64,000 nt of DNA from Macrostomum lignano (GCA_002269645.1 NIVC01002999.1:1-64000); one strand, 5' to 3'. Counted from the first letter of the stretch, positions 4,101 to 61,483 are shown. Numbers and translations are program-made. Notes: generated by a model from the letters alone, not told the origin.

Positions 4101-7100
4101 GTCGGGGTTCGATTCCCGATCATACTGGAACAATTTTTGTCCTTTAGCAAGACACTTAACTCTGCATTGTTTCAAGTTCACCCAGCTGTAAAATGGGTGC
4201 CAGCATTAGGAGGAGCAATTAAGGGTGGTGTGTTGCGATCCCAAAGTTCTTGGACTGAACAGCCGTACGCAGCCTTCAGATGCGCCGCCCCAAAGCTTCG
4301 GCTGAGCTGTCGGTTGCACATAGCCCAATTAGGGAAGGTTTAATGAATTATTATGTTTTTATCCTCTTTAAGAAGAATCTGACTGTAAAAAAGTTTTCAC
4401 AATGATCGACAACCTTCAATAAACTTCAATAAAAATCAGACGTACGCGTCTATTGGTTAAGATACCTTTAAAAAAATTTCACTATCGCAAGCTTTTAAGC
4501 TCATATTTTACAGACTCAGTAAAATACCACACTTATCTTCAGATAATCACAATAGTATTTCGCTATCTCGCAATGCTGCGCCAAATTGGTCCACTGGAGT
4601 GGCTCTACAACACTTTCCGCGTAGAAAGACGCAAGGGTCAGACATTTGACGACGAAAATTCTTCTACTGGGCCTCGTTGGAAGCTGAACCCGTTGCAGTA
4701 CTACTGCGACCAGCTGCTAGAGTGCCACATGCAGCGCTACCCTCTGGAGAGCTTGTTCACTGCTCGGTACGCGTTGCCTGAATACTCGCCTCGGGCCATT
4801 ACTGACTTTCTGGAATTTTTGAAGCCCGATAATTGCAAGGTGTTCGTTTCAGGCTTTGGCACAGACGAGTCTCATATGTGCACCTTTCTGTGTAAGTTGT
4901 CCTTTAATCTACAAAATGGTTACTAATTAAGTATCGGATAATTTAAAATCACTTATGACGTGATCTTCTTCGTTAGATTACTGATTATTCCATCCTTTCA
5001 CCCGCAGCTCCTGATGGCAAGCTCTGCTGCGAGCCGGATGGCCCAAATTTCTGCAGTATGGAAAAGCTCAAACCGGAACTGATTGCCACCTGCTCAGCTG
5101 CTTGGCCTTCTTCATCGTGCGAGTTCGATACTGAGCTGAAGCTGCCAAAACAGAATCTGTTTTTGTGCTCCGATTTTAGTCTGAGGCCCGACGAGACAAC
5201 TGATCAGGTCGGTATGGATTCCTAGCGGTGATGCGGTGGTCCAGATCTGTGTTAGGGTAGGTTAGGTTAGGGTAGTCGGATAGCTATAGTTCTAAGAGGG
5301 GCTTTTAGTGCTGCAGCTAATCAAGTCGACCGTTGAATCGCAGACAGAGTGGAAGCACACGCTCACACATGGTGTACAATGCCTATGACTTCATGGCTGA
5401 ATATGAATTGCAAGAATTGTACGGAGGAGTAGTTGTGTTATTGTGTCGACTTTTTTAAATTTCAGCAACCACAAGGACCGCGGCTGCTACGATTCGAAGC
5501 CGGGCCGCACACACCAGCCGCTCGCTTCTGGTTCCAGCAGGATAACAGGCTCCAGACTCCGATTGTCTTCATCTCAGTCGATTTGGTGACTTCGCCTGAG
5601 CCGCTTGTGACCGACTGCGCCTCGTCCGTCATGCTGGATATTTTTGTCGTGCTCCTAGTCGACCAGCTCAACAGCCTTGAAAGCCAAGCCAAGCAGGTTG
5701 ATCTACGTTTAAAAGTGTCGCGCAGCAAACAGGGCATTCAGGTGTGCTGCAGCGGCTACAGGCAGCCCCTGCCAAGTCTTGTGGCTGCCGCTCTGAGTCG
5801 GATTTTTGAGCTGAAGATTACGGAACATGCATTTCGTAAGGTGAGCTGTGCACAGTGTCTAACTAGAATTTTCCCGCCGACGAATATTTCCTGACGAGTT
5901 TGGCCTTGGGGATTCTTCTTAACTGCTCTGAACATATTTTTAAACGAGGCCAGCTGTTGAGGGGGCGCCAGCTACAGAGGGGGTGCCAGCAAACAGAGGG
6001 GACGTCAGCTACAGAGGGGACGCCAGCTACAGAGGGGACGCCAGCAAACAGAGGGGACGCCAGCTACAGAAGGGACGCCCAGCTACAGAGGGGGTGCCAG
6101 CTACAGAGGGGTGCCAGCTACAGAGGGGGTGCCAGCTACAGAGGGGGTGCCAGCTACAGAGGGGACGCCCAGCTACAGAGGGGGTGCCAGCTACAGAAGG
6201 GACGCCCAGCTACAGAGGGGGTGCCAGCTACAGAGGGGCGCCAGCTACAGAGGGGGTGCCAGCTACAGAGGGGACGCCAGCTACAGAGGGGACGCCAGCT
6301 ACAGAGGGGTGCCAGCTACAGAGGGGACGCCAGCTACAGAGGGGACGCCAGCTACAGAGGGGGTGCCAGCTACAGAGGGGACGCCAGCTACAGAGGGGAC
6401 GTCAGCTAGAGAGGGGACGTCAGCTACAGAGGGGACGCCAGCAAACAGAGGGGACGCCAGCTACAGAGGGGACGCCCAGCTACAGAGGGGACGCCAGCTA
6501 CAGAGGGGGTGCCAGCTACAGAGGGGACGCCAGCTACAGAGGGGGTGCCAGCTACAGAGGGGGCGCCAGCTACAGAGGGGGCGCCAGCTACAGAGGGGAC
6601 GCCAGCTACAGAGGGGACGCCAGCTACAGAGGGGACGTCAGCTACAGAGGGGACGCCAGCAAACAGAGGGGACGCCAGCTACCGAAGGGACGCCCAGCTA
6701 CAGAGGGGACGCCAGCTACAGAGGGGGTGCCAGCTACAGAGGGGGCGCCAGCTACAGAGGAGGTGCCAGCTACAGAGGGGACGCCAGCTACAGAGGGGGT
6801 GCCAGCTACAGAGGGGGTGCCAGCTACAGAGGGGGCGCCAGCTACAGAGGGGGCGCCAGCAAACAGAGGGGGCGCCAGCTACATTGGGATGCATTAATTG
6901 CCTACATGGATCATCGGCTCAGCAAATATAAATTAATGGGTTATCAATCTCCTCATTGTTTCAGGCTCGACGGAAAATATCTGCCCTGGAGGCGCAGAAA
7001 ACGCACAAAACGGACTTGTGCAAGTCGCAGCTTGCTATGCTACTAAATAGCGCCTGCTCTTGGCACTGGTCGTATCAGGATAAAAGAGTCGCTATTAACG

Positions 7101-8885
7101 GTATGTTTGCTAATATCTAAATATTCAATACAAAAATTCCAGACGAACTCTCTTCTCTACAAACCTTCACTTCAGAAACAACTCTGGAGAGCTTCATGAT
7201 ATTTGTCCAGCGATTCAGCAGTCAGATTCAGCTATCGTCGCAACCGCAACGTCTGGTCAGCGAGGACGAGGACGAAGAGGACAAACGAACTGACGCGGCT
7301 GTTGCCGTCATGAGCCTTTGGTCACGAATCTCCCTAGCCGAGGACGAAGAAGTCGTAGAGGAGAGCTCCGCGCTGCAGCAGACACTTCAGGAGGAGCAAG
7401 ACCAGCAGCAGAAGCAGCAGATTCCGCGCCAACTGTTTGCCGAGATTCTCGTTTATGGCAACGCTACAGCTAAAGATGCTGAAGCAGCCAGTCAAATCAT
7501 TTTGAACGCGCTGCCATCACCGACTCAGCGTACCACTGAGACAACATTTGAAGCAGTGAGGCGTCGAGTGTATCTACTCCCCAGCGGCAGCCATCACGTG
7601 CTCAGCTGACAATATCTGCTAATTATCAGAGGAAATCAGGGTGCGCTGTAGTACTTCAGGTGCCAAAACCGGTGCCAACTGCCGACACAAATATGGGCTT
7701 TGAAGACGCGATTAGACAAGACTGTTTGTTTTATCTGCTAATCGAGGTTTTGCAATGCCGCGGCGAGATGATCAATGACCCGTTGGATCGAGCTATAAAG
7801 ATACTAATACAGAGAAATTATCACGCCTATGTTGTTACATTTGACGTTGTGGATTCACAGCACCCGACAAAGGTAGGCCTATGTGTGAGAGTAGTGAATT
7901 AACAATGTCACTGAACCGAAAGGGTAGGCCGATGTGTGAGAGTAGTGAATTAACAATGTCACTGAACCGAAAAGGTAGGCCGATGTGTGAGAGTAGTGAA
8001 TGAACAATGTCACTGAACCGAAAGGGTAGGCCGATGTGTGAGAGTAGTGAATTAACAATGTCACTGAACCGAAAAGGTAGGCCGATGTGTGAGAGTAGTG
8101 AATTAACAATGTCACTGAACCGAAAAGGTAGGCCGATGTGTGAGAGTAGTGAATGAACAATGTCACTGGATCGAATCAGCTGCTTGTTTCCTATCGCTCT
8201 TTTTTCCAGATTGAAGAACAAGTGGAAAATTATATCGAAAAAATTGGCGATTACATTTCCTCTCTGTCAGAGGAGTCATTCCGATACTGCTTATCAAGCA
8301 TGGAGAAATCGATGCGCAAAGAAATTCCTACTACTGTCCAGGAGCAGCACGATTCCCATTGGCGCAGCATCACTCACGGTGTGCTGCGCTTCGACCGGGA
8401 CGCAAATTTGGCCAAGTGTTTAGACGCAGTGGTTGGAGGCATCAAGAAGGATTGTCTGCTTGAACTATGGCGGGTAAGTAGCAAAGTAGCAAAGTACCAA
8501 TTTTTTACCAGCGTTTATCAGATTCAACTTGAACTTAAGTTGGAGCTTATATAATTAGTCTTGTATAATATATACCGTTCGCGCCGCTTCCAGTCCTGCT
8601 TAAAGCGGGGATCTCCGAACCGGCGCAAGCTGTGCATCCATCGAATCTCCAGGGCGGCTTTCCCCGACGGCATCAGCGAGGCTGACTACGCTGATTACCC
8701 GGTGAGTCCTGAAGCCATACGCACTTGTTGACTCTTGTAGCGTTGGATGCGTTCTCCTTAATTAATTCTCTAAAAAACTCTATTTCCAGGGAACCATCAT
8801 ACGTAACAGAAATCTTTTCAAGCAAAGCCTGCTGCTAAGTCCCTTGCCATCGGTACAGAATTTGCGTCCGAACTCTGATGTCTAA
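1157..8885 (+). CDS. Insulysin/IDE-like (M16A) pseudo-peptidase, paralogue 1 (5' part not in window; two frameshifts)
   Basis: GT-AG exons with matching phases: 1157-1460, 1898-2058, 2172-2893, 3008-3106, 3707-3982, 4543-4891, 5008-5207, 5466-5840, 6965-7100, 7176-7872, 8210-8473, 8594-8701, 8790-8885 (TAA; AATAAA at ~8927). IDE-like blocks: FRYLAMLRKLGPQEWLFEE, RVIELTNGVQAIL, GIGRLHDP, NENYSANLL, FWFQQDNRLQTP, RFDRD, RRKLCIH, IIRNRNLFKQSL. One-base deficits at ~2465 and ~7602. Confidence 0.85.
3217..3689. repeat. 79-bp intronic tandem repeat, 6 copies
   Basis: agcttacattggttcccgaccacaaaagtagaacccgaggacg... starts at 3217, 3295, 3374, 3453, 3532 and 3611. Confidence 0.95.
4060..4350 (+). mobile_element. 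tRNA-derived SINE copy
   Basis: B-box GGTTCGATTCC at 4106-4116. Body (gcaagacacttaactctgcattg...cacccagctgtaaaatgggtgccagcattag...ttggactgaacagccgta) is shared with copies at 10.9-11.2, 22.2 and 32.0 kb. Confidence 0.8.
5950..6882. repeat. ~18-bp GC-rich intronic minisatellite, ~50 copies
   Basis: Unit gccagctacagagggg(g/a)(t/c), with occasional 1-bp length variants; lies between exons 5466-5840 and 6965-7100. Confidence 0.95.
7870..8168. repeat. 51-bp tandem repeat (~6 copies) beginning at a splice donor
   Basis: aggtaggcc(g/t)atgtgtgagagtagtgaat(t/g)aacaatgtcactgaaccgaaa at 51-bp period; the first copy overlaps the donor at 7873. Confidence 0.95.
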
Positions 8886-10126: not shown

Positions 10127-13100
10127 ATGCAACAGAGCCTAAAGCTTCCACAGCAGCAGTCGCCATCCCAGTCCAAGCAGCCTGAATCGGTAAATCAGCG
10201 ACCAAGTGTCACAATGTCCATAAAAGTTCGCGACAACAATGTACCCTTAGTAAAAGGAATCGAAGCTTACAAGCACACAAAACGACGATGCCTGGAGCTG
10301 TCGAACGGTGCCAGTGTTCTTCTTATTAGCTGGTCAAACTTGGAGCAGATTCAGGGCTTCTTCGATCCCTACAGCGTGTTTCTTTGCGTGAACCTCAACA
10401 TTGGCCGGCTTCACGACCCACCCGATTGTGTAGGCCTTGCCGAGTTGTGCCAACGACTGACGCTCTGCGGCTCCAAAAAATATCCGAACGACGAGCAGGC
10501 TGGTAAGTCAGTCAGTCCGTCTGAATCTGCTTGGCTAATTTCGCGGTGCGCTGTGGCTTTTTAAAATGGAACAGCATTTCAGCTACTAGCTGAAAGACCT
10601 AGTAGGGACGATTGACAATTCACCTGAACACCAAAATCTCGTTAACCGCTTGGTGATCAGGATGCTAGCACACCACCGGTACAGTATACGATCGCTACTC
10701 GTACGACGTACACGTTGCTCTGGTGCATCTATAACTGGTTAAAATGCCACGACGATTGATGGTTCAAGTTATTGAATCACTCTAATCGCAGTCTGTGCAG
10801 CATAACGGCGCCAATTTAGGCCCTCAAGCAAGGCTGACTGCTGTATGGGGTTTGTACGCTCTTAATTATAATAGGAATCATGATCGAAAGGACTGCAGTT
10901 ATCATTATTTAATAAGAATTGATTGCACCTGTCCCGATTGGGCCGGTTGTGCAACTGACAGCTCACCCGCAGCTATTGCGTGGCGCATCTGAAGGCTGCG
11001 TAATGGCTGTTTAGTCCAAGGACTGGGAGGTAGCCACACACCCTCAATAACCCCAGCTAATGCTGGGTACCCATTTTACAGCTGGGCGAACTGAAGCAAT
11101 GTAGAGTTAAGTGTCTTGCTCATTGCTCAAGGACACAAATTGTTCTAGTGGGATCTGGAATCGAACCCCGGACCTTTCATTAGGGAGTCCAATGTTCTAA
11201 CCACTAGGCTGCAATCCAGTTAACATTTAGTAATGTTAATAAACATTGTTTAGTATAATATCCGTGTTTGTTTTGTACATTGTTCTGAAAAAAAGTTTTG
11301 GTGTATAAGAGATCCCTAGGGAAATCGAAATTTGGTTCTTACTCAAGAAAAAATGCGAGTTGCTGACAAAACTGCGCCTAATTTGCAGGTCTGCTCACGA
11401 AAGTTCAGAGAGAAAGCAGCTCATACTCAGAAGAGATCACAATCGGGCAGCCGCAACAAGAAAGCCATAGCAACTCAATATTGTCCGAATCATTCGATTT
11501 CGACCCGCTCGCTCGAATTGAGGTCACCGAGGATCAGACAATTTACACTTTTACCCTGGAAACCAACTATCAGTTGGAGATGTTTCTGGACCATCTCTGC
11601 GCCGGGTTGCAGTGTCCGCTGTTTAACAAGACGGCAGTGGAGCGGCAGGTGCAAATCTGGCAGGCAGTCTCTAAGACGAATGCGCCCTCCCTAATAGACC
11701 AGTTAGAGCACTGCTCGGGTGACGCCAAGCATCCCTACAACCGGCTGCACCGTCAAAGTGGCCGAACTGTTGATAAATTATCTACCGATGAGCTAATTAA
11801 CCAACTGAAAGAATTTCACTCGAAAAACTATTCCGCTAATCTGTTGCGATTGGTGCTGTCGTATGCGAAGACACTGGACGAAATGGAGGTTGGTAAAAGT
11901 CGTTAATATGTGGTTGTAAAGATTACCATGGCTATAAATAAATTATGCACCAAATACTCGAATTGACAGGCAATGGTGCTGGAGTCTCTGGGTGGAATGC
12001 AAAATTTATCGCTTCCACGTATTCGCTTTCCTCGTCACCCGTACGATGGTACGGAAATGGCAGTAAAGGTAAAATTGTGCCGTAAGCCTGAAGCCAATTC
12101 TTTCAAAGTATTTCAATTTTTATTGCGCCAAGAGACACAAAAAGTTTATTAAAATAAAATGGCAACACACTAAAATTCAGCCACAAGCAAAGCTAGCGTT
12201 TTAAGATAGCGATAAACGCTACTGCAAAGAAGGGCGTCGTATGTTTTGGGCAGCCAATTTTGGGGTCATGTCCCCTTGACCAAAGATCATATATACACAA
12301 GATAGGCGACTTTTCATTAACCACTGGCCATAGAAGCTAATGTGAAAAATTTTGCTACTCGCGATAGCGCGAAGATCAACTACTGAACTCCATTTCGTCA
12401 GTAGTTTCTGCAGTGCGTGCGTCGTTATTAGTTTGATTGAGTAGTAGCTTTTATTTAATTTATGAGAAACAGCTAGGGAACCAGGAGCAGAGACTTTTGC
12501 ATAGTATTGGATTAAAATTTGACCTTTTTAGAACATCCATTATGCATTGGTGTGTTTAAGAAGCTTTAAATGCTGGCTAATCAATTTTACCCTTTTGAGT
12601 ATAACGCACGTCAGTAAAACAGTTTCAAAGTCCAGTGTTTACTATCGAAATGTCTATAAATAGCAACAGTACTTTACGTTTGCAGAAGGTCTTGATTGTT
12701 TATTATTACACTAATTACAATATTTCAGATATAATTGGCCTTATGACACATATTTAATTTTGCTAATTTTTACGTTTTCCCAGACATCGGAAGTCGTTTC
12801 CTTTTACGAGTATTTCATTGAACCCAAAAACAGATCCAATGAAAAAATTAAAGCAACAACATTAACCAAGTAATTATTCGAATAGAAAAGTTTTAATAGT
12901 ACTACCAATAGTCGTTCAGAATGAATAATATTACTATTAATAAGCCAAATAATTAGCAAAGTTAAATCCGTGGGCTTTATTATATAATCTACGTGGTACT
13001 ACTCACAAACATAATATATTAACGGTTTGATAGTACAATGTAGTAAAAACTGTTTTACTGCCGTGTACAGCTGATTTATAAGAAAATCTAGTATAGCGTC

Positions 13101-16100
13101 TTTCTACGTGTTCTTCATTCCTCTGTGCCCCCATGGCTACATGTACGCCACCACCAACAAATTCTAGGAGAAATGGTGATAAGACATTGAAAACCTATCA
13201 ACTCATTCTCTAGGTTCGCATCAAAGGTAAATCTCTCGGTGGAATTTACATTGTGTTCGCACTGCCCGACCAGTCTACTAAGTATCTGTCGTCGCCAGAT
13301 TTATTCTTAACCTTTCTGATGCACGTTGACGAGCGCGGCGGGTTGCAAGACTGTCTGCACAGATTCGGACTGGGCTATTGTCAGTGCCGACTGTTGCCTA
13401 GCGGCAATCTAGGCTTTGATTCGTACTGCATCGCCATCAAAGGCATGTGTAAAGTTCGCGATGCGGAGAACAGAGTGAGTAGATCTATATGTGCTCAGAT
13501 TATATAAAGATTGGTCAAAATGCATATTAAATAGTCTCGCTGTAGAACGGAGAGGTGAACTTAGGTACGCGGAGTGGGGCTCAAAGTAAAGCTCGAATCA
13601 CTGTGGAAATCTTACCAGACCAGTTCGGGACACTCGGCAGGGTTTCATGGTAGGAAGTTTATCAGACACATCACGAACTAGCTGGGACACTTACGAACAA
13701 CTATGCGCTATCGTGAAAGGGGTTGTCTTGCGATTCAGAGCCATGAGGCTAATCCCCAAGGTACAGAACGTGTACATAACCTGACAAATAAAATATCAGG
13801 GCCGATGTACACCCTGTGTGAGAGCGTTTATGAGTTCCCAGTGCCTGCTTACAGTATTGGTACACTTGTATGGGATCAGGAGTCTGCAGAGTGGGCTGAA
13901 TTGCTAAACGGCTGGTTGTAGGACGATGTAGCCAAACGCGTTGCACCATAATTAATGAATAATTAACAATAAATATATGCACTTGTTTCTGACCCGTGTA
14001 ACGAATCAATACTAGACTTCCACGTATTATACATTTTCATGTACACCTGTTATATTTAGCGCTCCATTTGCCAACACGCAGGCAATTACAGCAGTGTTCC
14101 GCTACCTGGCCTTACTGCGCGCCGTTGGCATTAACGAGCTTCAACGTAGAGAAATTTGTAAAACGCACGAATTGACTTATAATCCATTTAGTTTGACCGA
14201 GTTCGGTCCGCCGCCCGAGTGCCTGCCGCGGCGCATGCAGCGATATCCGCTCAGAGACCTGCTGGTAGCTCGTTTTAAAATGTCAAACACCGGGTCCGGC
14301 GTGCTCGTGGAATTCCTTAGTAGCTTATCACCGGATCGCTGCAAAGTTTTTGTTTCCGATACCAATGCCAGCAATAGGGAAGGTGCAACCAGTCAGTGTA
14401 AGTGTGCATTTTTACCCAGTGAACCGACACACTTTACCAGCGTAATATTTTGCCATTACAGTTTGGAAGTGACAAAAACAATTTGAAAAACGTTGGCCAT
14501 ATATATTATACTTCAGTTGGTTGATCAGATGTTGTCAGCACTCATTTTAGCGCCGCAGGCACTCATTTTGGCGCGGCGGGCACTCATTTTAGCGCCGCAG
14601 GCACTCATTTTGGCGCGGCGGGCACTCATTTTAGCGCCGCGGGCACTCATTTTGGCGCCGCGGGCACTCATTTTGACGCCGCGGGCACTCATTTTGGCGC
14701 CGCAGGCACTCATTTTGGTGCCGCGGGCACTCATTTTGGCGCCGCGGGCACTCATTTTAGCGCTGCAGGCACTCATTTTAGCGCCGCAGGCACTCATTTT
14801 GGCGCCGCGGGCACTCATTTTGGTGCCGCGGGCACTCATTTTGGCGCCGCGGGCACTCATTTTGGCGCCGCCGGCACTCATTTTGGCGCCGCAGGCACTC
14901 ATTTTAGCGCCGCGGGCACTCATTTTGGCGCCGCAGGCACTCATTTTAGCGCCTCGGGCACTCATTTTGGCGCCGCCGGCACTCATTTTGGCGCCGCCGG
15001 CACTCATTTTGGCGCCGCAGGCACTCATTTTAGCGCCGCAGGCACTCATTTTAGCGCCGCGGGCACTCATTTTGGCGCCGCAGGCACTCATTTTAGCGCC
15101 GCAGGCACTCATTTTAGCGCCGCCGGCACTCATTTTAGCACTCATTTTAGCGCCGCAGGCACTCATTTTGGCGCCGCAAGCACTCATTTTGGCGCCGCGG
15201 GCAATCATTTTGGCGCCGCAAGCACTCATTTTGGCGCCGCGGGCAATCATTTTAGCGCCGCGGGCAGTCATTTTGGCGCCGCGGGCACTCATTTTGGCGC
15301 CGCGGGCACTCACTTTGGCGCCTCGGGCACTAATTTTGGCGCCGCGGGCAATCATTTTGGCGCCGCGGGCACTCATTTTAGCGCCGCGGGCACTCATTTT
15401 GGCGCCGCGGGCACTCACTTTAGCACTCATTTTAGCGCCGCAGGCACTCATTTTGGCGCCGCAAGCACTCATTTTGGCGCCGCGGGCAATCATTTTGGCG
15501 CCGCAAGCACTCATTTTGGCGCCGCGGGCAATCATTTTAGCGCCGCGGGCACTCATTTTGGCGCCGCAAGCACTCATTTTAGCGCCGCGGGCACTCATTT
15601 TGGCGCCCCAGGCACTCATTTAAGCACCCGTTGGCGACGCCCCTGCCCCCTGCCCTTCATCTGACCCCACCCCCAACTAGAGATTAAAAGCTTTGTAATA
15701 CATCGGTATTGGCGCAAAAGTAGAGAACTTTATAATCAATATCAATATACTGTAAATATTCGTAAACAAAGTAGACATCGTCATAAATATATAGATGATG
15801 TCAAGACACAAAAATGGAGTCAGAACACAGATTTTGGGGGACGCAAAGAGGTACATTTACGTGGGCATAAATAATAAAGAAAAAAGGGTAAAATTTAAAA
15901 GCAACGAAGAATACACTGCAAAAACTTTTTTACTTTTTTTACAAAGGGTCTAAGTGTATTCGGCCAAGTACTATTAGATTAGCTTCTTGCCACATAACTA
16001 AGTTTAGGTTTTCACGAGCGTGAATGACAGAATCATAAGGCCAGTTGAAGTGTCAGTTATCGATAGTATCATTTTTTTCACAGCCCCAGACAGCAGCAAG

Positions 16101-19100
16101 CCGGGAGAGCGCGTCAAGTTTACAGTGGAGAAAATTCCATCGGAGCTCCTGTCGGCTTGGGCCGCCAGCTGGCCGTCGAAGTCGGAGTTCGATGCCGACT
16201 TTATTCTGACACCGATCGGTCCCAATCCGACGCTGCCTCGTCCGCATCGATTTTTGCCCTGGAAAATTCCCTCGGAGGTGAGTGCGAGTTTAGCAATGAA
16301 AAATGTCTTGCTGGAAATTTTTATGCTGCCATAAATAAAATCAATAGACACATCGATTAGCAGAAGGATCGTGTTCATCCTAACGCAACGCCTTCGGCGA
16401 CATCGTCTCATACCCAAGTCTGCCCATTTCGCTGACTCCTGGGCACATACAAGCGTGCAAACACTCATACACACGCTCACACAGGGTTTACATCGGTTCT
16501 AACTTTCCAATCGTCAGGCATGTAGACTCTCTGGGCCTTAAGTTAATGCGAGTCGCATACGAGCGTAAAAACCTCCCCAGCCAATTTTCGTGTGCACAAT
16601 CCCTTATTTAATGTGGCGTTCGGGAATGGGACGTGTTTACACTCTGCTCTCATTTATAATTACGTGTATACTTTGATATCTTAAGTAAGATGCCTCTTTA
16701 AAGTCGCTCATAATAATCCGTTTCTCTACCCTACAGTTCTCTACTATTCGATCAGAGTCTTCAACGTTGATAAAATCTCGTTGCAACGATCTCGGGGCAC
16801 CGGTGTCGCTCGAATACGCTACGACAAGGTGCAACTGCTTGGAGTTAACGAACGGCGCCCAAGCCATTCTGCTGCACAGCGAAGGTCTTGAAAATAAATC
16901 ATTCGTCTGCGTCAGCCTTGGCGTCGGTCGGTTGCACGACCCACCGGACTGTGCGGGACTGGCTCAGCTGTGCCAGCGCCTGACTCTGCTTGAGTCGAAG
17001 AAGTATCCAAACATAACCGAGTGCTTGCACAATCTTCTCTATATAAACAGCTATCAAGGGTCGCCGTACTACGCGACGAGCGTTTCCGACGACCAGACAA
17101 CTTACCGGTTCGAAATCGACAATTCATTCTTACATGAAAGTCTAGACCGTCTTAGTGCGGGTATCCTGAGCCCTGAATTTACCGAGTCTAGTCTTACCCG
17201 TGAGCAACATCAGAACTTCTACAGTTGCAAGATTTCTGCCTTGGATTGCCTACAGCGCAGCTCGGGAAATTCAACTCATCCGATCAATCACCTGATACAG
17301 GGCAATAATAAGACCGTGGGTTTGCTTGAGTTCAAAGAGCTGCACAAGCATCTAACTAGCTTTCATTCGCGGTACTACAGCGCTAATCTGCTGCGTGTAG
17401 CAGTGTCTAGCAGCCACAGCATGGAAGACATAGAGGCAAGAGATCATTTTTATGTCACTTTTTTAATTGAGTCAGGGGTGCTAAACAAACAGTTTAATGT
17501 TTCAACAGGCAATGGTTCTCACAGCATTCGGTGGAATGCCGAATCTGTCAGTATCGCCGCTGTCCTGCTATACTCACCCGTTCGAGGGCTCTAAGTTGGG
17601 CGTCAAGGTAAGCTTTATCTCTCTCATGGTCTCAATTACCAGGACCACTAGAAATTGTGTCGTATCAGAATTTAGCACTTACCGTCTATGAAAAAATCTA
17701 ATTGAAGGCTAAATTTCGCTCAAAATTTGCGATCGTCGTAATATCGATCGTAGGAGGTAAGAAATTGTCGAATAAGTGATTGAAGACGATAGAACGTAAC
17801 TGCTACGTCCTGATGCAAACTAAGCTTCTAGTGATCATTCAAGATTTTTACAGGGCTTATAAATAATAACTTTGCATTACCTAACTTGTCCAGATTCGAG
17901 GAAAGTCATTAAGCCTCGGCGGAGCGCTGCACATCGTGTTTCCTCTGCCCGACCAGACGGAGTTGTACAAAACCTCACCCGATCTGTACGTTAGTTACTT
18001 TCTCAACAGTGACTGCGGCGGCAGTTTAAACGCCTGTCAGGATCAGCTCAATATTGCAACAGTATCCGCCGGGATGCAGAACTCCGGTTCGCTAGGATTC
18101 GATTCGTATTGTGTGACAGTGTTATTATCGAATACTACTGATCTAAGTAAAGCTGATCTGATTAAAACTGAGAACAATGTGAGTACTTTATAAACAGAGC
18201 AGGATTATTTACAAAAAACAAGTTAGTCGGGCCTTTGGACACTGCCGAAAATAAAGGTGGCAGTCTCTCTAGCCATGACAGATGAAGGCAGTGCAGGTAA
18301 AGGCCGGTTCACATTACCACTAATTGCTATGCTGGTCAAAGATTGCCCAAACCAACAATGCACAGTCGATTCAGGTTCATTTAAAAAATAAATTTGAGCA
18401 ATATTTTGTCCCCAGAGTTACTGATGGTACTACGAAGTGGTCTTCTAATAATATTGTAACTTTAAATTTCTTACATTCTTCGGACGTCCAATACTTAAGC
18501 TTATAACTTATTTTGCTTTTTAACTGTGTAGATAGACACTTTCAACAACCTTCACCTATCAAACCATTTTAAAATCTGTAATAAATACTCGTGCTATTGC
18601 TAGCTATATTTTATTGATGTTAACGTGGACGAATCTCAACATTTTTAGGCAATAACAGCCGTATTCCGGTACCTAACAATGCTGCGACAGCTGGAGCCTC
18701 GGGAGTGTCTGTTCAACATGGTCCGTCTTGCTCAAAGAAGGCTGTTCAATTTCGACCGCGAAGGCGAGTGCATGGCGCCGGGCAGTGAAAAACTCGACCC
18801 GTTGCAGCGGTTCTGCGATGAGTCGCTGCAGGTGCATTTGCAACGGTATCCAGTTAAGGAGCTGCTTACTGCTAGAAGTGGCGCCAAGCTTGAATACTCG
18901 GCACAGGATATCGCGGCATTCCTTCGCTTGCTTGTTCCAACCAACTGCAAGATTTTCGTCTCCGATTTTGGAGCAGATGCCGATCACGAGTGCTCGTTGT
19001 TAAGTGAGAATTATTTCTGTTTCTTATGGTGTATTTTTACCGCAGCACCAATCTGCTCATCTTTCCTGGTGTGATAAACGCAAGGGCGTTGCCAGAATTC

Positions 19101-22100
19101 TTCTTTGGGAGGCTGAGTCGTCTGGGGGCTTTAGCACAAAGGGCTTTAGCACCAGGGGCTTTAGCACAAAGGGCTTTAGCACCAGGGGCTTTAGCACTCT
19201 AGGGGCGCCAGCACCAGGGGCACCAGCACCAGGGGCGCCAGCACCAGGGGCGCCAGCACCAGGGGCGCCAGCACCAGGGGCGCCAGCACCAGGGGCGCCA
19301 GCACCAGGGGCGCCAGCACCAGGGGCGCCAGCACCAGGGGCGCCAGCACCAGGGGCGCCAGCACCAGGGGCGCCAGCACCAGGGGCGCCAGCACCAGGGG
19401 CGCCAGCACCAGGGGCGCCAGCACCAGGGGCGCCAGCACCAGGGGCGCCAGCACCAGGGGCGCCAGCACCAGGGGCGCCAGCACCAGGGGCGCCAGCACC
19501 AGGGGCGCCAGCAACAGGGGCGCCAGCAACAGGGGCACCAGCACCAGGGGCTTTAGCACCAGGGGCTTTAGCACCAGGGGCGCCAGTACCAGGGGCGCCA
19601 GCACCAGGGGCGCCAGTACCAGGGGCGCCAGCACCAGGGGCGCCAGCACCAGTGTGTAAAGTACATTGCCATAAAAAATCCGTCGTATTTTCGTCCGTCA
19701 CTCCCCAGCACCTGGCGGCAGTCTCTGCTGCAAGCCGAAGAAGGCAAACGAGCTGCACACGCTGGAAAAGCTGCCATCGGATCTTCTCACCGCCTGCTCA
19801 GCCAGCTGGCCAACTGCCTCCATCATGGCGGACACTTTGATCAAGCCGCCAAGGGAAAACTTGTTTATCAGTGCCGATTTTCAACTTAAATCGAGAGAGA
19901 AAAAATTTGAGGTATTCAATAATCTTTATTTATGTTTTACTATGCTTCTGCAAGGGAAACTAGCAAGTAGGTAGTGGTTTGTCGTGCAACCAGGGCCAGA
20001 TCCTGATCCAGATCCTACCAGACAAAATCAAGTAGAAATCTCTATGTATTAGTTCAGTACATGTACCTTGATTATGTGCTATTTGATATCTTTGCACTCA
20101 AAGCAGTCTTGTTTAGATCATAGTTTCTAAGAAACCAAAGAGACGGCAGTCCTTGCTCCTTTCCACGTCTAATTTTAGTCGTCCGGTCCTCAGCAGCTGC
20201 TGATCAAACAGTTTCCCAACGGCACCAGCATTTCTGGTGCTCGACTCTGGTTCTGTCAGGACGGCCTGCAGTCGTTCAAAACTCCTCATTGTTTTATCGC
20301 AATTGATCTGCTGACGTCGCCTGGATCGATTGTCACAGATTGCAGGTCTTCCATCCATCTGGACTATCTGGTGCAGCTGATTGAACTTCACATTCAGGAG
20401 TTAAAGGAACTGGCTTTAGAAGCCGAACTAGATTTGGAAATTTCCCGTAGCGACAGTGGAATTCAGATCTGCGCTGCAGGCTACAGTCAGCCTCTGCCCC
20501 TGCTGATTTCGACTGTGATGCAGAAGATTACAGAGCTGGATATTACTGAAACTTCGTTTTCAAGGGTAAGAATTGCTTTGACACGTACGGGGGGAATTGT
20601 CCGCAGTTTCTGACACTTTTAATTCCATTTTTATACAAATTTGCTGTCATGGTAAAGTGCATGGCACATTACTTATTTCTGATAAATTTAATCCCGGATG
20701 TGTTGGTCTGTTCATTAAAAATTTGAGCTTTTAAGCAAATTTGAGCCTGTTTCGCAACCTCCACACTCGCCGGAACTCGCGCCAGCCGATTTCATTATTT
20801 TTCCGCAGCTGAAGGGGCGAGCCGTTCGATGGGGTGAGTTGATGCCAGCAAGGATCATTTGGAAGACAAGATCTGGTGCAGACTCCCCAAGGTATTTCAG
20901 GACAGTGCTGTTTTAAAGCGATTGACGGGATGCTCAAGCCATAGAGGAAGTGTGTTGCTACAGGTGGAGAGGATGCTCAAGCCGTGGAAGAAGTGAGTTG
21001 CTACAGGTGGAGAGGATGCTCAAGCCGTGGGAAAAGTGAGTTGCTACAGGTGGAGAGGATGCTCAAGCCGTGGGAGAAGTGAGTTGCTACAGGTGGAGAG
21101 GATGCTCAAGCCGTGGGAGAAGTGAGTTGCTACAGGTGGAGAAGATGCTCAAGCCGTGGAAGAAGTGAGTTGCTACAGGTGGAGAGGATGCTCAAGCCGT
21201 GGGAGAAGTGAGTCGCTACAGGTGGAGAAGATGCTCAAGCCGTGGGAGAAGTGAGTTGCTACAGGTGGAGAGGATGCTCAAGCCGTGGGAGAAGTGAGTT
21301 GCTACAGGTGGAGAGGATGCTCAAGCCGTGGGAGAAGTGAGTTGCTACAGGTGGAGAAGATGCTCAAGCCGTGGGAGAAGTGAGTTGTTACAGGTGAAGA
21401 GAATGCTCAAGCCGTGGGAGAAGTGAGTTGCTACAGGTGGAGACTGTGTTGAGAAGGATGTCTTAATTAAAAGGCGATTATGATAATTTAAGCCAATGAT
21501 CTGTTTATATAAGGACAAACCATCGCCTTTTATATCCGTTGTCACAGTCACTGCTAAGACTATTAGTGGCATCGCGACGCTTTCTCAAGCATAAATTTCC
21601 AACGCACATGACCATAATACGAGATTGAATTTATCAGAAGAAAGAAATGTACCGCTTTAATACTCGTATGGCACCAACAAATTTGTGTTTGCAGCCGCTT
21701 CCAAAAGTGTCCGAACTTTCCGGACAACCCTCTTCCATGCATTGACTGTGATGAGTTGAATTTTACTACTAGTTCTGAACAACTCTACTAGTAGTAGCGC
21801 AGCAGAGTTTCGCCGATTTTTTCAGGCTCGTTTATCAGTGAAGTCCTCTCTGAAGAACGACGAGGACGCTGATTCTTCGGAGGCACTGCAATGCTTGACG
21901 CTCATTCTGGGGACGCCGGCTGCGATGAACTGGCCGCACCGGGACAAGAGCTCAGAAGCGAAGAGTAAGAAGAGCTCAAAGATAATAATTATTTCATGCT
22001 TAAATAAGAAAGCGTCATTCAAAGAGAGTTGAGGTATAGTAGAGTTCAGTGCGGAAATGCATATTAGAAAAATTAACAATGATAAATTTCCCAACGGTTT

Positions 22101-25100
22101 CCTGCAAACAGACACCTATGAATTATCCAGTAATAATAAATACACCTGCCACAATGGGGGGGGCACACAGCCTCAATTACCCCAGCCAATGCTGGCACCC
22201 ATTTTACAGCTGGGTGAACTGAAGCAATGCAGCTAGGCTACAACCGCAACACTAGGCTACAACCCCAACACTAGGCTACAACCCCAACACTAGGCTACAA
22301 CCGCAACACTAGGCTACAACCCTAACACTAGGCTACAACCCAGGGTTTTTTTTACCCCAATTAGTACCCCATGGGGTATTAGTCAACTGATTTGGGGTAC
22401 TATTTTGCCCATTAATACCCCAGAATGGGGTACTATTTTTTCGACTTTAATTCAAACAAGTTAAGCTTTTTTCTAAAATTTGCTGTTCAATTAAAATTCT
22501 GACTGGGCTGGTATGGGTCTTTGTACTAAGGTATATCCACTCGTGTGGTGAGTCAGACTGTCAGGCTAAAACTCTAAAAGTGAGAGAGGGTTGGAATTGG
22601 AAACTGATCTAATTGGAATTAGATTTAGATTAGATTGCGATACTGCAACGCCATCTAATTTACTTGAAATTTCGAAATCTAGCTTGTTCAGCCTTCAACG
22701 AAAGACACAAGAATGCAGTCAAACATTAGCAGCTGTGTTTTAACTCTAAATATAGTCTTGATTAAGTTATTTGACTGCGCCAGAATCAATTTTTATAAGA
22801 ATTCAAGTAAACTACAGAGGCAAAATTAGAAATTTCATGGGGTATTACTCCTCCAAAATGGGGTACTACTCAGAGGCTTGATACCCCAATTCGGGTACTA
22901 ATCAATAGCGAAAAAAAACACTGCTACAACCCCAACACTAGGCTACAACCCTAACACTAGGCTACAACCCAACACTAGGCTACAACCCCAATACTAGGCT
23001 ACAACCCCAATACTAGGCTACAACCCCAACACTAGGCTACAACCCCAACACTAGGCTACAACCCCAACACTAGGCTACAACCCCAATACTAGGCTACAAC
23101 CCCAACACTAGGCTACAACCGTAACACTAGGCTACAACCGTAACACTAGGCTACAACCGCAACACTAGGCTACAACCGCAACACTAGGCTACAACCCTAA
23201 CACTAGGTTACAACCCCAACACTAGGCTACAACCCCAATACTAGGCTACAACCCCAATACTAGGCTACAACCGCAACACTAGGCTACAACCCCAACACTA
23301 GGCTACAACCCCAACACTAGGCTACAACCCCAACACTAGGCCACAGAAAGGATCGAGAAAGGGCCAGTGACAGCAGAGGCAAAGAAACTCAGCGCCAAAC
23401 ATGTCCGACTCTCGCACCACACGATCCCCTTGGTTCGATTCGGTGTGCAGCCCCATTTATCGTAATTGTGAACAAAAATATTGGTCTGACCGTTGTCGCA
23501 CGATTCACACAGAGTGTACATGCCCGATGATTAGAAAGTCATGGCTGCTGTACACCTTGTATGAGCGTGTGGATGAGTGCGTGTCTGAGTACAATATCTG
23601 GAAGAATGCCCCCCTGTGCTGATTGTGGAACAATTTCGCCGATATTCAGAGCAAACTCTCCTGCAAATATCTATTAATAAGTGACAAAATTGATTCCCTA
23701 ACATTCGATTATTTGTCTATTTCGTTTAAGACAAAACAAGAAATAATATTTTTGCAGAGGCAACCTATGAAAGCGTACTGAAGTTTGCCCAGGACAACTA
23801 CGGTCCATTGTTCACTCGTTTACAAAAGCAGCAGCAGCAGCAAAAGTCACCGCAGCCACAGCAGTCTCCGCCCCGACAGCTGTTTATAGAGGTGCTTGTT
23901 TATGGCAATGCCAAAGCAAAAGAAGCAGTGGCCGCGGCAAAGAAAATCCTGGACAAAGTCTCTTCGCAACAGTCTCCAGCAGCAGCAGCAAAAGCTTTGT
24001 CACCTTCATCTTGGGAGTCGCTGAAGAGCCGAGGCGTCCTACTTCCACCGGGAAGTCACTATCTGCTTAAATTGCCGAGTAGCACAAAATCAGGCATGGC
24101 GTCGAGTTGCGTGGTCGTCTTTCAGTTCGTTACGCCTCTTTCTCTTAAAACTGGTGAAAAAATTGCCCAGGATTTTCTTTTTGATTTGCTTCTGCGGATT
24201 CTTCGTCTGAACATTGAACAGAGCGACGTACCCGGTTGTGCTCAGGTCCAACTGGAGCAGATACCCGGCCATCACGGAAATATTCTTGTGATCGATGCCG
24301 CGTCTATCACTCAGCACCCAACTGTGGTACGTGCAGCGTTATGAAATGCTCATTTTATTATTAGGATTTATTATATAAATAATCAGGGATGTCATGTATC
24401 AGAAATCAAGGATGCATCAGGGATTCCAGGATCAGGGATGCCAGCATCAAGGATGCCAGCATCAAGGATGCCAGCATCAAGGATGCCAGCATCAAGGATG
24501 CCAGCATCAAGGATGCCAGCATCAAGGATGCCAGCATCAAGGATGCCAGCATCAAGGATGCCAGCATCAAGGATGCCAGCATCAAGGATGCCAGCATCAA
24601 GGATGCCAGCATCAAGGATGCCAGCATCAAGGATGCCAGCATCAAGGATGCCAGCATCAAGGATGCCAGCATCAAGGATGCCAGCATCAAGGATGCCAGC
24701 ATCAAGGATGCCAGCATCAAGGATGCCAGCATCAAGGATGCCAGCATCAAGGATGCCAGCATCAAGGATGCCAGCATCAAGGATGCCAGCATCAAGGATG
24801 CCAGCATCAAGGATGCCAGCATCAAGGATGCCAGCATCAAGGATGCCAGCATCAAGGATGCCAGCATCAAGGATGCCAGCATCAAGGATGCCAGCATCAA
24901 GGATGCCAGCATCAAGGATGCCAGCATCAAGGATGCCAGCATCAAGGATGCCAGCATCAAGGATGCCAGCATCAAGGATGCCAGCATCAAGGATGCCAGC
25001 ATCAAGATCAGGGATGTCAGGGATCAGGGATCAGGGACGCCAAAGCTAACTCCAATAGTGCTGCATACTTGTACATGTATACTTTTGATATTCATTTGTT

Positions 25101-26650
25101 AAAAGGGCTGCAACCACGTCTACACACGGGGTATTTATTCACAAGCTACTTCTTCGAAATGTTTTTTGTTATACTTGCAATTTTGATCCCAGATTGAAGA
25201 TCAAATTGAATCTTTCATCGGACGTACTGAAGCAATGATCAATACAGCTCTGGCCAACCCGGCATTCGATTGGAGACAGGGTTGTAAAGAAATGATTGAG
25301 ACAAAGACTTGCCGGAACGTTACTCAGCAGGGCGGCTTCTATTGGAAAGCTATCACTGGCTCGGCATACCGATTCGCCTGGGACACTAGCTCCGGAGCCT
25401 ACCAGAACCTGCCGGAAAACTTTGACAAAACAGTCAACAAAGAGTTGATCGCTCTGTGTCAGGTACCGACTGTCGAGTATGGGTTGAGTTAAAGTGGGTG
25501 TTCCCAACCAGTTTTATTAACTCCTCTTCGACACCCTTACGTCCCGATCTCTAGGCTACGCTACATACCGACAGAAAACGTCATTGGAAATGGCTTCCGG
25601 CCATGAACAAAAATCTCAATAAGTATGGACGATAGATCTTTTATTCCCTAGATAGGCCACTTTGTATTGCGGCAATAGGGAAAGAGCGATCGTTGTTTAT
25701 CGGTTGCTTAAATTTTGAGTTCAATAGCTTAGGGACATACATGTAGGCGCTATTTTTTTGAGAATTTGATAGAACTTGTGGAACGAACATTTCCACAAAG
25801 GAGGTAAATAAATTCTACTATTCAAACTAAGAATTATGCATGCAGAGACTACTGACGAAATTGAGTTCAGTAGTTGATGGTAAAGTTTTAAAGTTGTTGA
25901 GTTGTAAAGTTTTCAAATTAGCTTATATGGTCACTATAGTGGTTGATGAGTGGCCCATCTTGTGTATATATAATCTTTGGTGTGGACTTTTGAATAAGCT
26001 ATCTTGATTATATATGGCCAGAAGCCATACTCCCGACCACAGATCCTAAAAACACTAGATATGTCAACTCAATATGAACGCAATGGAGTCGGAGTTGGGC
26101 GTAGTTCAGACAGACTCGATCACATAGCTCGTAGACTTCATCATTGTGTGACCACATTTTTTTCATTTGGTTGACAAATCTCATGTTCTTAGGATCTGTG
26201 CTACCGACTTTTTAAACTCGGTTGGCAATCTATTTTTACGCTCTGGATAAGATAAATGCACGTCAACTATATCCATCAGGTCCCTTAAGTCGTTATATTT
26301 GCTAACTTCAAGCTCGCTAGTCTCAATGTTTTAATTCCAGAAATTTTTAAAACCTGAATCGCCTGAACGTCGAAAACTGTCAATTCACAAGGAGTCGAAA
26401 TTGAAGTTCGACGGAGCAACGGAAAACTTTTACTCCAAATACCAGGTGCGGATTTTTATAAAAATCGCACACTGAATTGATGACATATCACAAACACTAA
26501 ATGAATAGCTTTGAGTTTTCGATCTTGATTTTTCTGTCTTTCTCAAAATTTCAGGGCAAGACGATTAAAAATCTGTTGGAGTTTCGTCAGAGCCTGAAGC
26601 AGTGCCCTCCAGTACCGTCTGAAATTCTCGACTGCGTTCACGAACTTTGA
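10127..26650 (+). CDS. Insulysin/IDE-like (M16A) pseudo-peptidase, paralogue 2, ~1650 aa, domain order D1-D2-D1-D2-D3-D4
   Basis: 17 phase-compatible exons: 10127-10502, 11389-11888, 11970-12068, 13214-13474, 14082-14397, 16084-16277, 16737-17435 (GC donor), 17509-17607, 17894-18178, 18649-19003, 19709-19911, 20179-20565, 21826-21964, 23758-24326, 25193-25462, 26341-26445, 26555-26650. Total 4953 nt = 1650 aa + TGA. IDE-like motifs LELSNG/LELTNG, GRLHDPPDC, GSKKYP, YSANLLR, QRYPL, LWFCQD, ERRKLSIH. Confidence 0.88.
10905..11217 (-). mobile_element. tRNA-derived SINE, near full length
   Basis: Minus strand reads ggattgcagcctagtggttagaac (A-box-like) ... ggttcgattcc (B-box), followed by the same body as the 4.1-kb copy. 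Confidence 0.85.
12607..13065. mobile_element. Possible MITE with 19-bp imperfect TIRs
   Basis: cacgtcagtaaaacagttt (12607) versus aaactgttttactgccgtg (ends 13065), one mismatch; AT-rich non-coding interior; no TSD found. Confidence 0.45.
14535..15622. repeat. 21-bp intronic minisatellite, ~50 copies
   Basis: Unit gcactcatttt(g/a)gcgccgc(g/a)g. Confidence 0.97.
19125..19652. repeat. 15-bp intronic minisatellite, ~35 copies
   Basis: Unit agcaccaggggcgcc, with variant agcaccaggggcttt at the edges. Confidence 0.97.
20588..21733 (+). mobile_element. Decayed, internally deleted mariner/Tc1 element
   Basis: Transposase remnant QPPHSPELAPADFIIFPQLK (20755-20815), matching the YSPDLAPxD motif. C-terminal ...KCVATGG...GDCVEK. 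Degenerate long TIRs (ttgtcc...gacactttt...acaaatttg...ttctgataaatt) at both ends; TA at the left flank. Confidence 0.8.
20929..21443. repeat. 43-bp tandem repeat, 12 copies, inside the mariner relic
   Basis: gatgctcaagccgtgggagaagtgagttgctacaggtggagag at 43-bp period. Confidence 0.95.
22155..22235 (-). mobile_element. SINE fragment
   Basis: cacacagcctcaattaccccagccaatgctggcacccattttacagctgggtgaactgaagcaatgcag is the reverse complement of the SINE body at 32.0 kb. Confidence 0.8.
22235..23342. repeat. 19-bp minisatellite (22235-22340 and 22924-23342), split by a MITE
   Basis: Unit aacactaggctacaacccc. Confidence 0.95.
22341..22923. mobile_element. hAT-type non-autonomous element (583 bp)
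   Basis: TIRs CAGGGTTTTTTTT / AAAAAAAACACTG; 8-bp TSD CTACAACC (22333-22340 and 22924-22931); subterminal ggggta/tacccc repeats. Confidence 0.85.
24425..25010. repeat. Near-perfect 15-bp minisatellite, ~38 copies
   Basis: Unit caaggatgccagcat, containing the inverted pair gatgc/gcatc. Confidence 0.97.
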
Positions 26651-59300: not shown

Positions 59301-59712
59301 ATCATAGAATAACCACTCTGTTAACCATCAACTAAAGACTTGCCATCAACTAAATGTAATAGGGTCGATCTTTTATTCTTACTAATAGTAGTTTTAAGCG
59401 GGTTTAATGAGCTATTTTTACTCAGCCAATCAGTAAATTTCCTTGTTTAAATCCCTTAATTATTTTGTTTTAACTAACTTCAGCCAATGGAGTTTAATAA
59501 TTTGTTATAATTTCGTAAGCTATTTTGTTATAATTAATTTCATCCAATCAAATTAAGTTTTATCCTCTATATAAACGGAACGATTGACCAAGAATAAAAT
59601 TAACTGGCTCTTCCGCGAATTTTCGCGAGCTCGCTCTCAACCGGAGAGGAAGCGTTTTTGCCATCCAAACCAAAACGTGAGTTGAAACTTGCGAGTCTTA
59701 GTTCTTTGTAGG

Positions 59713-60020
59713 AATAGGGAGAAATCAGAGGTCGTGGAGACCCAGAACTAGGGATCTGAATAGGGAGAAATCAGAGGTCGTGGAGACCCAGAACTAAGGA
59801 TCTGAATAGGGAGAAATCAGAGGTCGTGGAGACCCAGAACTAAGGATCTGAATAGGGAGAAATCAGAGGTCGTGGAGACCCAGAACTAGGGATCTAAATA
59901 GGGAGAAATCAGAGGTCGTGGAGACCCAGAACTAGGATCTAAATAGGGAGAAATCAGAGGTCGTGGAGACCCAGAACTAGGATCTAAATAGGGGGAAATC
60001 AGAGGTCGTGGAGACCCAAG
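59713..60020. repeat. 46-bp tandem repeat (~7 copies) inside the LTR
   Basis: aatagggagaaatcagaggtcgtggagacccagaacta(g/a)ggatct. Confidence 0.93.
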
Positions 60021-60504
60021 ACAGAGGTCTAAAATTAAGGAGAAATTTAAGGTCGTGCAGACTCTAAGGAAGCCGTACTGGCTAATAATAGGTATTAGGC
60101 GCTAGGAAATTAGGCATTAGAGGAGTGAATTAGCTACTGCTGGACACCCTTGATCCTCGGAAAACGCTAGACTTTCGGACTAAAATTAGGAAATTAGACA
60201 GTGTCTTACCGCTCGGGCACTACACGCTATCACAAGGTTTCCAAGAAATCGTGTGAAATTAGAGAAGGGTCATAGTTCAGAGGCAGCCAATACTACTAGA
60301 AGTAGACAGCTTAGGGACAGGAACCAGAAAGTCTGTGAAAGGCTCAGTAGCTTTAAGGTGGAATTGCAGTTAGAACGAGTACGTCTGCGACAACTTGGTG
60401 ACATCTAGTGGGATCTAGAAGAAGGAGGAAACAAATCTGTAACAACTTGGTGGCAGCGTTAAGGGATCAAGAAACCAGCGGAAAGCTAACTAGATAAGTG
60501 AAAA

Positions 60505-61449: not shown

Positions 61450-61483
61450 AATACAGAGGGTGGCATGAGAGGCCACGACCCTC
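61440..61483 (+). promoter_or_regulatory. -1 ribosomal frameshift signal
   Basis: G GGA AAC heptamer immediately before the gag TAG, a 9-nt spacer, then hairpin gagggtggc...gccacgaccctc. Confidence 0.8.

Follow-up and report, generated by a model that had tools for sequence, protein, structure and literature searches.

The 64,000-nucleotide stretch of Macrostomum lignano DNA analysed here (GCA_002269645.1, NIVC01002999.1:1-64000; hereafter the window, with positions counted from its first letter) carries two insulysin (IDE)-like genes in tandem. The second of these, gene A (Mlig000040.g5), is a gene of 17 exons on the + strand at 10127-26650 and is the subject of this report. The first, paralog B (Mlig028065 family), lies upstream of it. 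A preliminary description of the window, made from the DNA letters by themselves, had proposed that gene A is one gene for a protein with the domain order D1-D2-D1-D2-D3-D4, in which the N-terminal half of a four-domain IDE is duplicated and joined in frame at 16277/16737. This proposal is supported by an annotation based on RNA sequencing (RNA-seq), by seven gene models that read through the junction, by B and a third paralog, C, by selection on the extra half, and by a fold model of that half. We refer to the first D1-D2 block of each gene as the a-half (D1a-D2a) and to the second as the b-half (D1b-D2b).

Structure of gene A and the D2a-D1b junction

The exon model of gene A was rebuilt independently from the raw sequence (Table 1). 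Its coding sequence (CDS) of 4953 nt comprises 1650 codons and a stop, with no internal stops. All of the acceptors are AG, and all of the donors are GT except that of exon 7, which is GC (GAG/gcaaga, 17436) and is also kept in the homeologous copy. The model is 100% identical across 100% of its length to GenBank PAA53923.1, the hypothetical protein BOX15_Mlig000040g5 of Macrostomum lignano, whose CDS on NIVC01002999.1 (GCA_002269645.1) has the same coordinates as in the window. The clean 1650-residue frame of the preliminary description was thus recovered both by the rebuilding and by identity to the deposited protein.

The exon at 16084-16277 closes at a phase-0 GT donor (GAG/gtgagt), and the exon at 16737 opens at a phase-0 AG directly into a second domain 1 that has no ATG of its own, both as had been described; the first Met of the second half occurs only 229 residues in. 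The acceptor at 16737 has a good pyrimidine tract, is preceded by ttctctaccctacag, and is followed by TTC as the first codon (ctacag/TTC). The junction is phase 0/0, the open reading frame (ORF) is uninterrupted across it, and the junction peptide predicted for the six-domain product is FLPWKIPSEFSTIR.

The Pfam scan suggested in the preliminary description was run and gave, in residues 1-582, Peptidase_M16, M16_C and the first part of M16_M, followed in residues 583-1650 by M16 (E=2e-11), M16_C (E=2e-7) and a full M16_M (E=5e-28). When residues 583-1650 were compared with human IDE chains using phmmer, the match (E=1.5e-46) extended across D1-D3 and was weak across D4. Residues 583-1650 therefore hold the four domains of an M16A protein, and two extra domains precede them. 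The two D1-D2 blocks share an exon plan: exons 3 and 8 share a length of 99 nt, exons 4 and 9 correspond, and the ends are in phase 1 for exons 5 and 10 and in phase 0 for exons 6 and 11. This shared structure agrees with duplication of a genomic block. D1 carries one additional intron in the a-halves only, at positions that are not identical in A, B and C.

Paralogs with the same architecture

On homeologous contigs the array has the order X - C - B - A, followed by a gene for a 623-residue protein. Full-length models of B (1653 and 1655 amino acids) and the model of C (1602 amino acids) have the same six-domain order as A. The junction is phase 0/0 in all three genes, with introns of 459 nt in A, 113 nt in B and 544 nt in C and consensus donors GTGAGT, GTAAGC and GTTAGT, respectively (CAG/gttagt in C), and in none of them is there an ATG before the D1b core. 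The b-halves of A and B are 45-46% identical, and every a-half is 31-39% identical to any other unit; B and C have thus retained both the architecture and the phase-0/phase-0 junction at only 31-46% identity. In a neighbour-joining tree the eight D1-D2 units formed a clade with 100% bootstrap support, apart from two canonical M. lignano IDEs. The b-halves of A and B were paired in this tree (81%), and a- and b-halves of the same gene never clustered.

The B copy in the window has 1-bp deletions at 2456 (GGATC-AAATCG) and 7603 (GTGCT-CAGCTG) relative to its homeolog on NIVC01002566.1, each of which breaks the frame. The deletion at 2456 is also present on NIVC01004151.1, where the ORF between the two frameshifts has been given the annotation of a 742-residue protein (P0012). 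This copy of B is either a young pseudogene or the product of assembly indel errors.

Annotation evidence and the possibility of trans-splicing

The M. lignano annotation was derived from StringTie/TACO assemblies of RNA-seq data and a mapped de novo transcriptome, not ab initio, and in its TBONE pipeline transcription units were split at mRNA ends identified from spliced-leader or poly(A) reads (PMC5730564). A cut at 16277/16737 is absent from this annotation in every copy, and the exact 1650-residue CDS is present. Because TBONE cuts at mapped leader and poly(A) peaks, an uncut CDS across the junction provides indirect RNA-level support for cis-splicing. Seven transcript-based GenBank models cross the D2a-D1b junction, three of them for A (P0001, P0005 and P0006), two for B (P0010 and P0011) and two for C (P0016 and P0164); P0164 runs from D1a through D3 within a single ORF. 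Two independent annotations concur on the junction, the BOX15 models and the UniProt A0A1I8... models, which we take to be WormBase ParaSite predictions. From the public annotation we infer that the six-domain mRNA is the main mRNA of the gene.

Several observations weigh against a single six-domain mRNA of single origin. The RNA support for the junction is indirect, reaching us through the annotation, and the six-domain product is predicted from gene models. D1a lies in the same ORF as the rest of the protein in only one copy of A (g5, that of the window) and one model of C. In the annotation, A copies g1 and g4 start only at Met294 (exon 3) and the B models only within D2a, yet those contigs have intact upstream exons. 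The mRNA 5' ends must therefore be either heterogeneous or poorly assembled; heterogeneous 5' ends, leader sites within the gene or an incomplete assembly may explain the late starts. The acceptors before D1b are phase 0 in all three genes and open exons without their own ATG, which would fit a start at the AUG of the M. lignano spliced leader, and the CTACAG acceptor at 16737 fits the reported [T/C]TNCAG trans-splice motif (PMC8629364). Finally, the neighbour-joining tree joins the a-halves of B and C at 56% and leaves that of A unplaced, so that a single ancestral duplication is likely rather than proven. The extra D1 intron was considered as a shared derived character of the a-halves and is weak evidence only, its positions differing and its phase being 1 in A, 0 in B and 2 in C. 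No Logan-derived or other transcript-assembly fragments of gene A were present in the protein collection, the clusters of which hold NCBI and UniProt entries only.

A trans-spliced start at 16737 is biologically realistic because the M. lignano leader, CGGTCTCTTACTGCGAAGACTCAATTTATTGCATG, has ATG at its end (PMC8629364). About 30% of M. lignano genes are trans-spliced and 15% are in operons, with a modal intergenic distance of about 100 bp (PMC8629364). The AUG of flatworm leaders has been put forward as a possible initiator (Cheng et al. 2006, as cited in PMC12582326), and an outron becomes an intron when a cis donor is placed upstream (Conrad et al. 1993, as cited in PMC8629364). The locus might accordingly be expressed mainly as two cistrons. 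The upstream one, a D1a-D2a mRNA for a protein of about 600 amino acids, would read 18 codons past 16277 to the TAA at 16332 and be polyadenylated after the AATAAA at 16334. The downstream one would be a leader-initiated mRNA from 16737, in which the 3'-terminal AUG of the leader supplies an in-frame Met for an ordinary four-domain protein of 1069 amino acids (M-FSTIRS...). Besides the acceptors, this arrangement would account for the stop and AATAAA that follow the exon-6 donor in gene A, and the junction introns (113-544 nt) are within the range of operon spacers. TBONE, however, cuts at leader and poly(A) peaks, yet the seven models in three genes are uncut at the junction. All three paralogs, though diverged, have a strong consensus donor at the homologous site. 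The junction intron of B, at only 113 nt, has no A[AT]TAAA, and no AATAAA was seen in that of C. As the mark of a separate 3' end in gene A, the AATAAA is weak, since about 0.2 would be expected by chance in 459 nt (an estimate from base composition). In an operon the upstream cistron would be expected to show its own stop and poly(A) signal with no paired cis donor; what we found was a donor kept in A, B and C, and AATAAA only in A. We consider two cistrons quite unlikely as the main output of the locus. A leader-initiated four-domain protein is possible as a minor isoform beside the six-domain mRNA.

The uncut models could also be spurious, if a truncated D1-D2 gene and an adjacent full gene had been wrongly merged by assembly or prediction. 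Similar genes stand here in tandem, in a polyploid assembly that is redundant and rich in repeats, and multi-mapping reads could bridge copies; doubtful multi-unit M16A predictions also exist elsewhere (Dinoponera P0028 and Trachymyrmex P0138). However, the a- and b-halves of the same gene are only about 35-39% identical as proteins, which precludes cross-mapping of reads between the two. A start codon is absent from the second D1 exon, the 113-nt intron of B leaves no room for a promoter, and three paralogs as well as the homeologs, whose splice sites are conserved, retain the junction, on which both annotations agree. A merging artefact is very improbable on this evidence.

Selection on the extra half and its predicted fold

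The A copy of the window (g5) was compared with its homeolog g4 (L002). Each retains all 17 exons intact, and every splice site as well, the GC donor included. The a-halves differ by 12 synonymous and 3 non-synonymous changes, a ratio of non-synonymous to synonymous differences per site (pN/pS) of 0.08 (binomial P=5e-6); the extra half is under purifying selection. The junction intron differs by about 2.6% substitutions and an 8-bp indel, and both of its splice sites are conserved. Along the gene, pS between the homeologous copies was 0.030 in the a-half and 0.005 in the rest, a difference of about six-fold, which suggests gene conversion or differing coalescence depth.

When the a-half was modelled alone from a 95-sequence alignment, the predicted local distance difference test score (pLDDT) was 82 and the predicted template-modelling score (pTM) 0.84. 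The best structural matches of this model were human IDE chains (E=2.7e-32; query-normalised TM-score 0.65-0.69 over about 540 columns), and its sole large disordered stretch was the insert at residues 135-164. The extra half is thus predicted to fold as a complete IDE N-half. An AlphaFold2 model of both N-halves jointly (residues 1-1129), aimed at their possible packing as a clamshell and drawing on only three sequences that span both halves, gave a pLDDT of 35.7 and a pTM of 0.28, values too low for use.

These results bear on whether the first D1-D2 block is a relic, that is, decaying leader exons or 5' untranslated region of a four-domain gene whose open frame is incidental. Such decay would agree with the weaker Pfam scores of the a-half relative to the b-half, with the faster divergence of a-halves than of b-halves between paralogs, and with the omission of D1a from several annotated models. 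Yet A, B and C have each kept an unbroken a-half ORF of about 1.7 kb while their amino-acid sequences diverged by about 65%. The selection between homeologs and the confidently predicted IDE-like structure also contradict it, and without the a-half the remaining ORF has no start codon short of a leader AUG. A relic is therefore scarcely credible and is largely refuted.

Loss of the zinc-binding site

Active IDEs, including the M. lignano proteins P0019 and P0020, contain the motif GLAHFCEHM, in which HFCEH provides the HxxEH zinc site. In gene A it is replaced by ELCQR in D1a and QLCQR in D1b, and in the alignment HxxEH was missing from 8/8 D1 units of the M. lignano family. The distal zinc-ligand Glu (E189 of human IDE) lies in the segment (R)EVxAVxSEHxKN; a six-residue stretch of that segment, the Glu included, is missing from seven of the eight D1 units, and the a-half of C has unrelated sequence instead. 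Having lost both HxxEH and the distal Glu, the family consists of predicted non-peptidase homologues, and its sequences predict no zinc-dependent peptidase activity. The preliminary description, which recognised the insulysin-like identity of gene A, did not remark on the loss of these residues from both D1 copies. Signatures specific to the family, GxGRLHDPPDC and LxRCSGN, are conserved. No signal peptide or C-terminal targeting motif was evident on inspection by eye, and on that basis a cytosolic location is assumed.

Distribution of the architecture

Residues 1-1129 were scanned exhaustively with HMMER against 1.84 billion cluster representatives. The close relatives came from M. lignano only (A, B, C, X (P0017), P0018 and fragments), and all other matches were ordinary IDEs with at most 33% identity. 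Among the longer matches examined, no D1-D2-D1-D2-D3-D4 protein with transcript support was found outside the family; these matches comprised two ant proteins, one a full-length unit in duplicate (P0028) and the other a mosaic prediction (P0138), and fusions with unrelated domains. Trichinella P0086 and metagenomic P0097, considered as M16A proteins with an extra half, proved instead to be fusions with trypsin or carbonic anhydrase domains. A full-text literature search found no paper on these genes, on Macrostomum IDE, or on six-domain M16 proteins, and the gene identifiers occurred in no indexed paper nor in the supplement of PMC5816591. The architecture, which the preliminary description treated as possibly undescribed, thus appears to be undescribed in the literature searched, the sequence itself being already public as a hypothetical protein (PAA53923.1).

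Features of the window

The coordinates of gene A, paralog B and the other features are given in Table 1. Minisatellites occur in nearly every long intron of both IDE-like genes, with units of 15-79 bp in up to about 50 copies at 87-99% identity; they supply much of the intron length and of the GC swings in the composition profile. The single-exon gene downstream of gene A encodes the 623-residue protein of the array; it is wrongly joined to gene A in UniProt model P0008 (2104 amino acids), presumably a WormBase ParaSite prediction. Farther downstream, the ORFs at 40360-47822 suggest, on a reading by eye, a Maverick/Polinton-like element, which appears to be interrupted by a putative retrotransposon integrase ORF.

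Table 1. Features of the 64,000-nucleotide window, in window coordinates
Feature	Position	Strand	Description
Paralog B	1157-8885	+	5' end lost at contig start; second half of D2a, then D1b-D2b-D3-D4 and stop; last coding codon ends at 8882
Paralog B junction intron	2059-2171	+	113 nt; donor TTA/gtaagc, acceptor tttttag/, both phase 0
Gene A exon 1	10127-10502	+	Start ATG and first portion of domain 1a; phase-1 end
D1a active-site motif	10433-10459	+	Degenerate, GLAELCQRL; HxxEH lost
Gene A exon 2	11389-11888	+	Remainder of domain 1a, including the disordered insert
Gene A exon 3	11970-12068	+	99 nt; pairs with exon 8
Gene A exon 4	13214-13474	+	Domain 2a; pairs with exon 9
Gene A exon 5	14082-14397	+	Domain 2a (AITAVFRYL...); phase-1 end; pairs with exon 10
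Gene A exon 6	16084-16277	+	End of domain 2a and start of linker; phase-0 donor; pairs with exon 11
Gene A junction intron	16278-16736	+	459 nt, non-coding; separates first and second N-halves
Read-through stop	16332-16339	+	TAA 18 codons past the exon-6 donor, overlapping AATAAA (16334-16339), the sole AATAAA of the junction intron
Gene A exon 7	16737-17435	+	Entire domain 1b, no ATG of its own; phase-0 acceptor ctacag/; GC donor
D1b active-site motif	16956-16982	+	Degenerate, GLAQLCQRL; HxxEH lost
Gene A exon 8	17509-17607	+	99 nt
Gene A exon 9	17894-18178	+	Domain 2b
Gene A exon 10	18649-19003	+	Domain 2b; phase-1 end
Gene A exon 11	19709-19911	+	End of domain 2b and linker; phase-0 donor
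Gene A exon 12	20179-20565	+	Domain 3 (Peptidase_M16_M); phase-0 acceptor
Short ORF in exon 12-13 intron	20719-20913		...PELAPADFIIFPQLKGR...; by eye resembles a mariner-type transposase remnant
Gene A exon 13	21826-21964	+	Domain 3
Gene A exon 14	23758-24326	+	Domains 3 and 4
Gene A exon 15	25193-25462	+	Domain 4
Gene A exon 16	26341-26445	+	Domain 4
Gene A exon 17	26555-26650	+	Stop TGA at 26648-26650
Intron minisatellites	3217-3690, 5959-6883, 7864-8175, 14538-15621, 19148-19652, 20928-21443, 22923-23345, 24414-25006		
Single-exon gene	28017-29888	+	623-residue low-complexity Q-rich protein; no Pfam hit on record
Putative Maverick/Polinton-like element	40360-47822	-	Long ORFs, by eye like protein-primed family-B DNA polymerase and rve-type integrase
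Putative retrotransposon integrase ORF	42943-44691	+	GC-rich
Tandem repeat	59712-60062		46-bp unit; just upstream of the gag-pol-like pair
gag-pol-like ORF pair	60502-63998		Long terminal repeat retrotransposon; runs off the window end

Interpretation

We consider it likely that 10127-26650 is one cis-spliced gene whose main product is the 1650-residue six-domain M16 protein, that its architecture stems from a single tandem duplication, and that the protein, its zinc site lost, functions presumably by binding. It would consist of an IDE-N-like module (D1a-D2a, residues 1-582) ahead of a complete four-domain body (D1b-D2b-D3-D4, residues 583-1650). The origin of this arrangement was most likely a single event, in which the D1-D2 exon block was duplicated in tandem before A, B and C separated. 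The phase-0 donor at the end of D2, normally spliced to D3, would then have met the acceptor before the second D1 exon, and the reading frame was thereby preserved. A trans-splice acceptor may have come with the duplicated D1 exon and then been used in cis by the upstream D2 donor. This order of events we infer. Because the zinc site is lost throughout the family, the proteins would not be peptidases; speculatively, they serve as a peptide or protein cage or as a scaffold.

The junction intron might, further, be a former outron, captured when the D1-D2 block was duplicated, and the locus a switch between alternative "lids" of one pseudo-protease cage. Because every block boundary is phase 0, three in-frame proteins sharing the C-half could come from one locus: the six-domain a-b-C protein by cis-splicing, the four-domain b-C protein from a leader AUG at 16737, and a four-domain a-C protein of 1103 amino acids by skipping of exons 7-11. 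We regard such a switch as doubtful.

To our knowledge, M16 metalloproteases have been described as paired two-domain halves, either in two chains (M16B) or in one four-domain chain (M16A and M16C). The six-domain family is a real, lineage-specific variant of the M16A architecture, so far in one flatworm. If three halves do occur in one selected and expressed chain, the question arises whether the third caps a second chamber, competes for the C-half or promotes oligomerisation; any such packing is speculative. The locus also illustrates how duplication of an exon block can stay in frame in an organism that trans-splices.

Comparison with known systems

The closest known systems are IDE/insulysin (MEROPS M16A; human IDE, e.g. 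PDB 2G47 and 3E4Z) and E. coli pitrilysin (1Q2L), with which residues 583-1650 share the Pfam order Peptidase_M16, M16_C, M16_M. Those proteins have four domains in about 1000 amino acids, whereas gene A encodes six in about 1650 and its zinc site is gone; the exon boundary in the D2-D3 linker is reused in gene A as the a-to-b junction. The canonical, motif-intact M. lignano IDEs (P0019 and P0020) are encoded by genes separate from the A/B/C family. At the junction, the phase-0 acceptor directly before an ATG-less ORF resembles the configuration expected for flatworm spliced leaders with a 3'-terminal AUG; gene A differs in having a consensus cis donor upstream and annotated mRNAs that are cis-spliced across the site.

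Two ant models likewise exceed four M16 domains, Dinoponera quadriceps XP_014469183.1 (P0028, 1835 amino acids) and Trachymyrmex cornetzi "nardilysin" KYN15627.1 (P0138, 1349 amino acids). The former has two complete four-domain units head to tail, with degenerate motifs (HLCQH and HLCQR), and the latter is a mosaic in which near-identical segments recur. Neither is related to the flatworm clade, at 22-29% identity. P0028 is labelled PREDICTED, P0138 is taken as a prediction from its near-identical mosaic, and both are probably merged tandem genes. These ant predictions, which probably come from tandem arrays, hint at more than one tandem expansion in animals of IDE-like genes whose active sites are altered.

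Non-catalytic M16B subunits, namely alpha-MPP and the core 1 and core 2 proteins of cytochrome bc1, hold substrate or act as a scaffold. Like gene A, they keep the M16 fold under selection without a functional zinc site. They are two-domain chains that form heterodimers, whereas gene A has three two-domain modules per chain and M16A ancestry. With its zinc site gone, the flatworm family would be a natural IDE-type cage kept for a non-catalytic role, and it bears on the debated protease-independent, chaperone-like roles of IDE itself.

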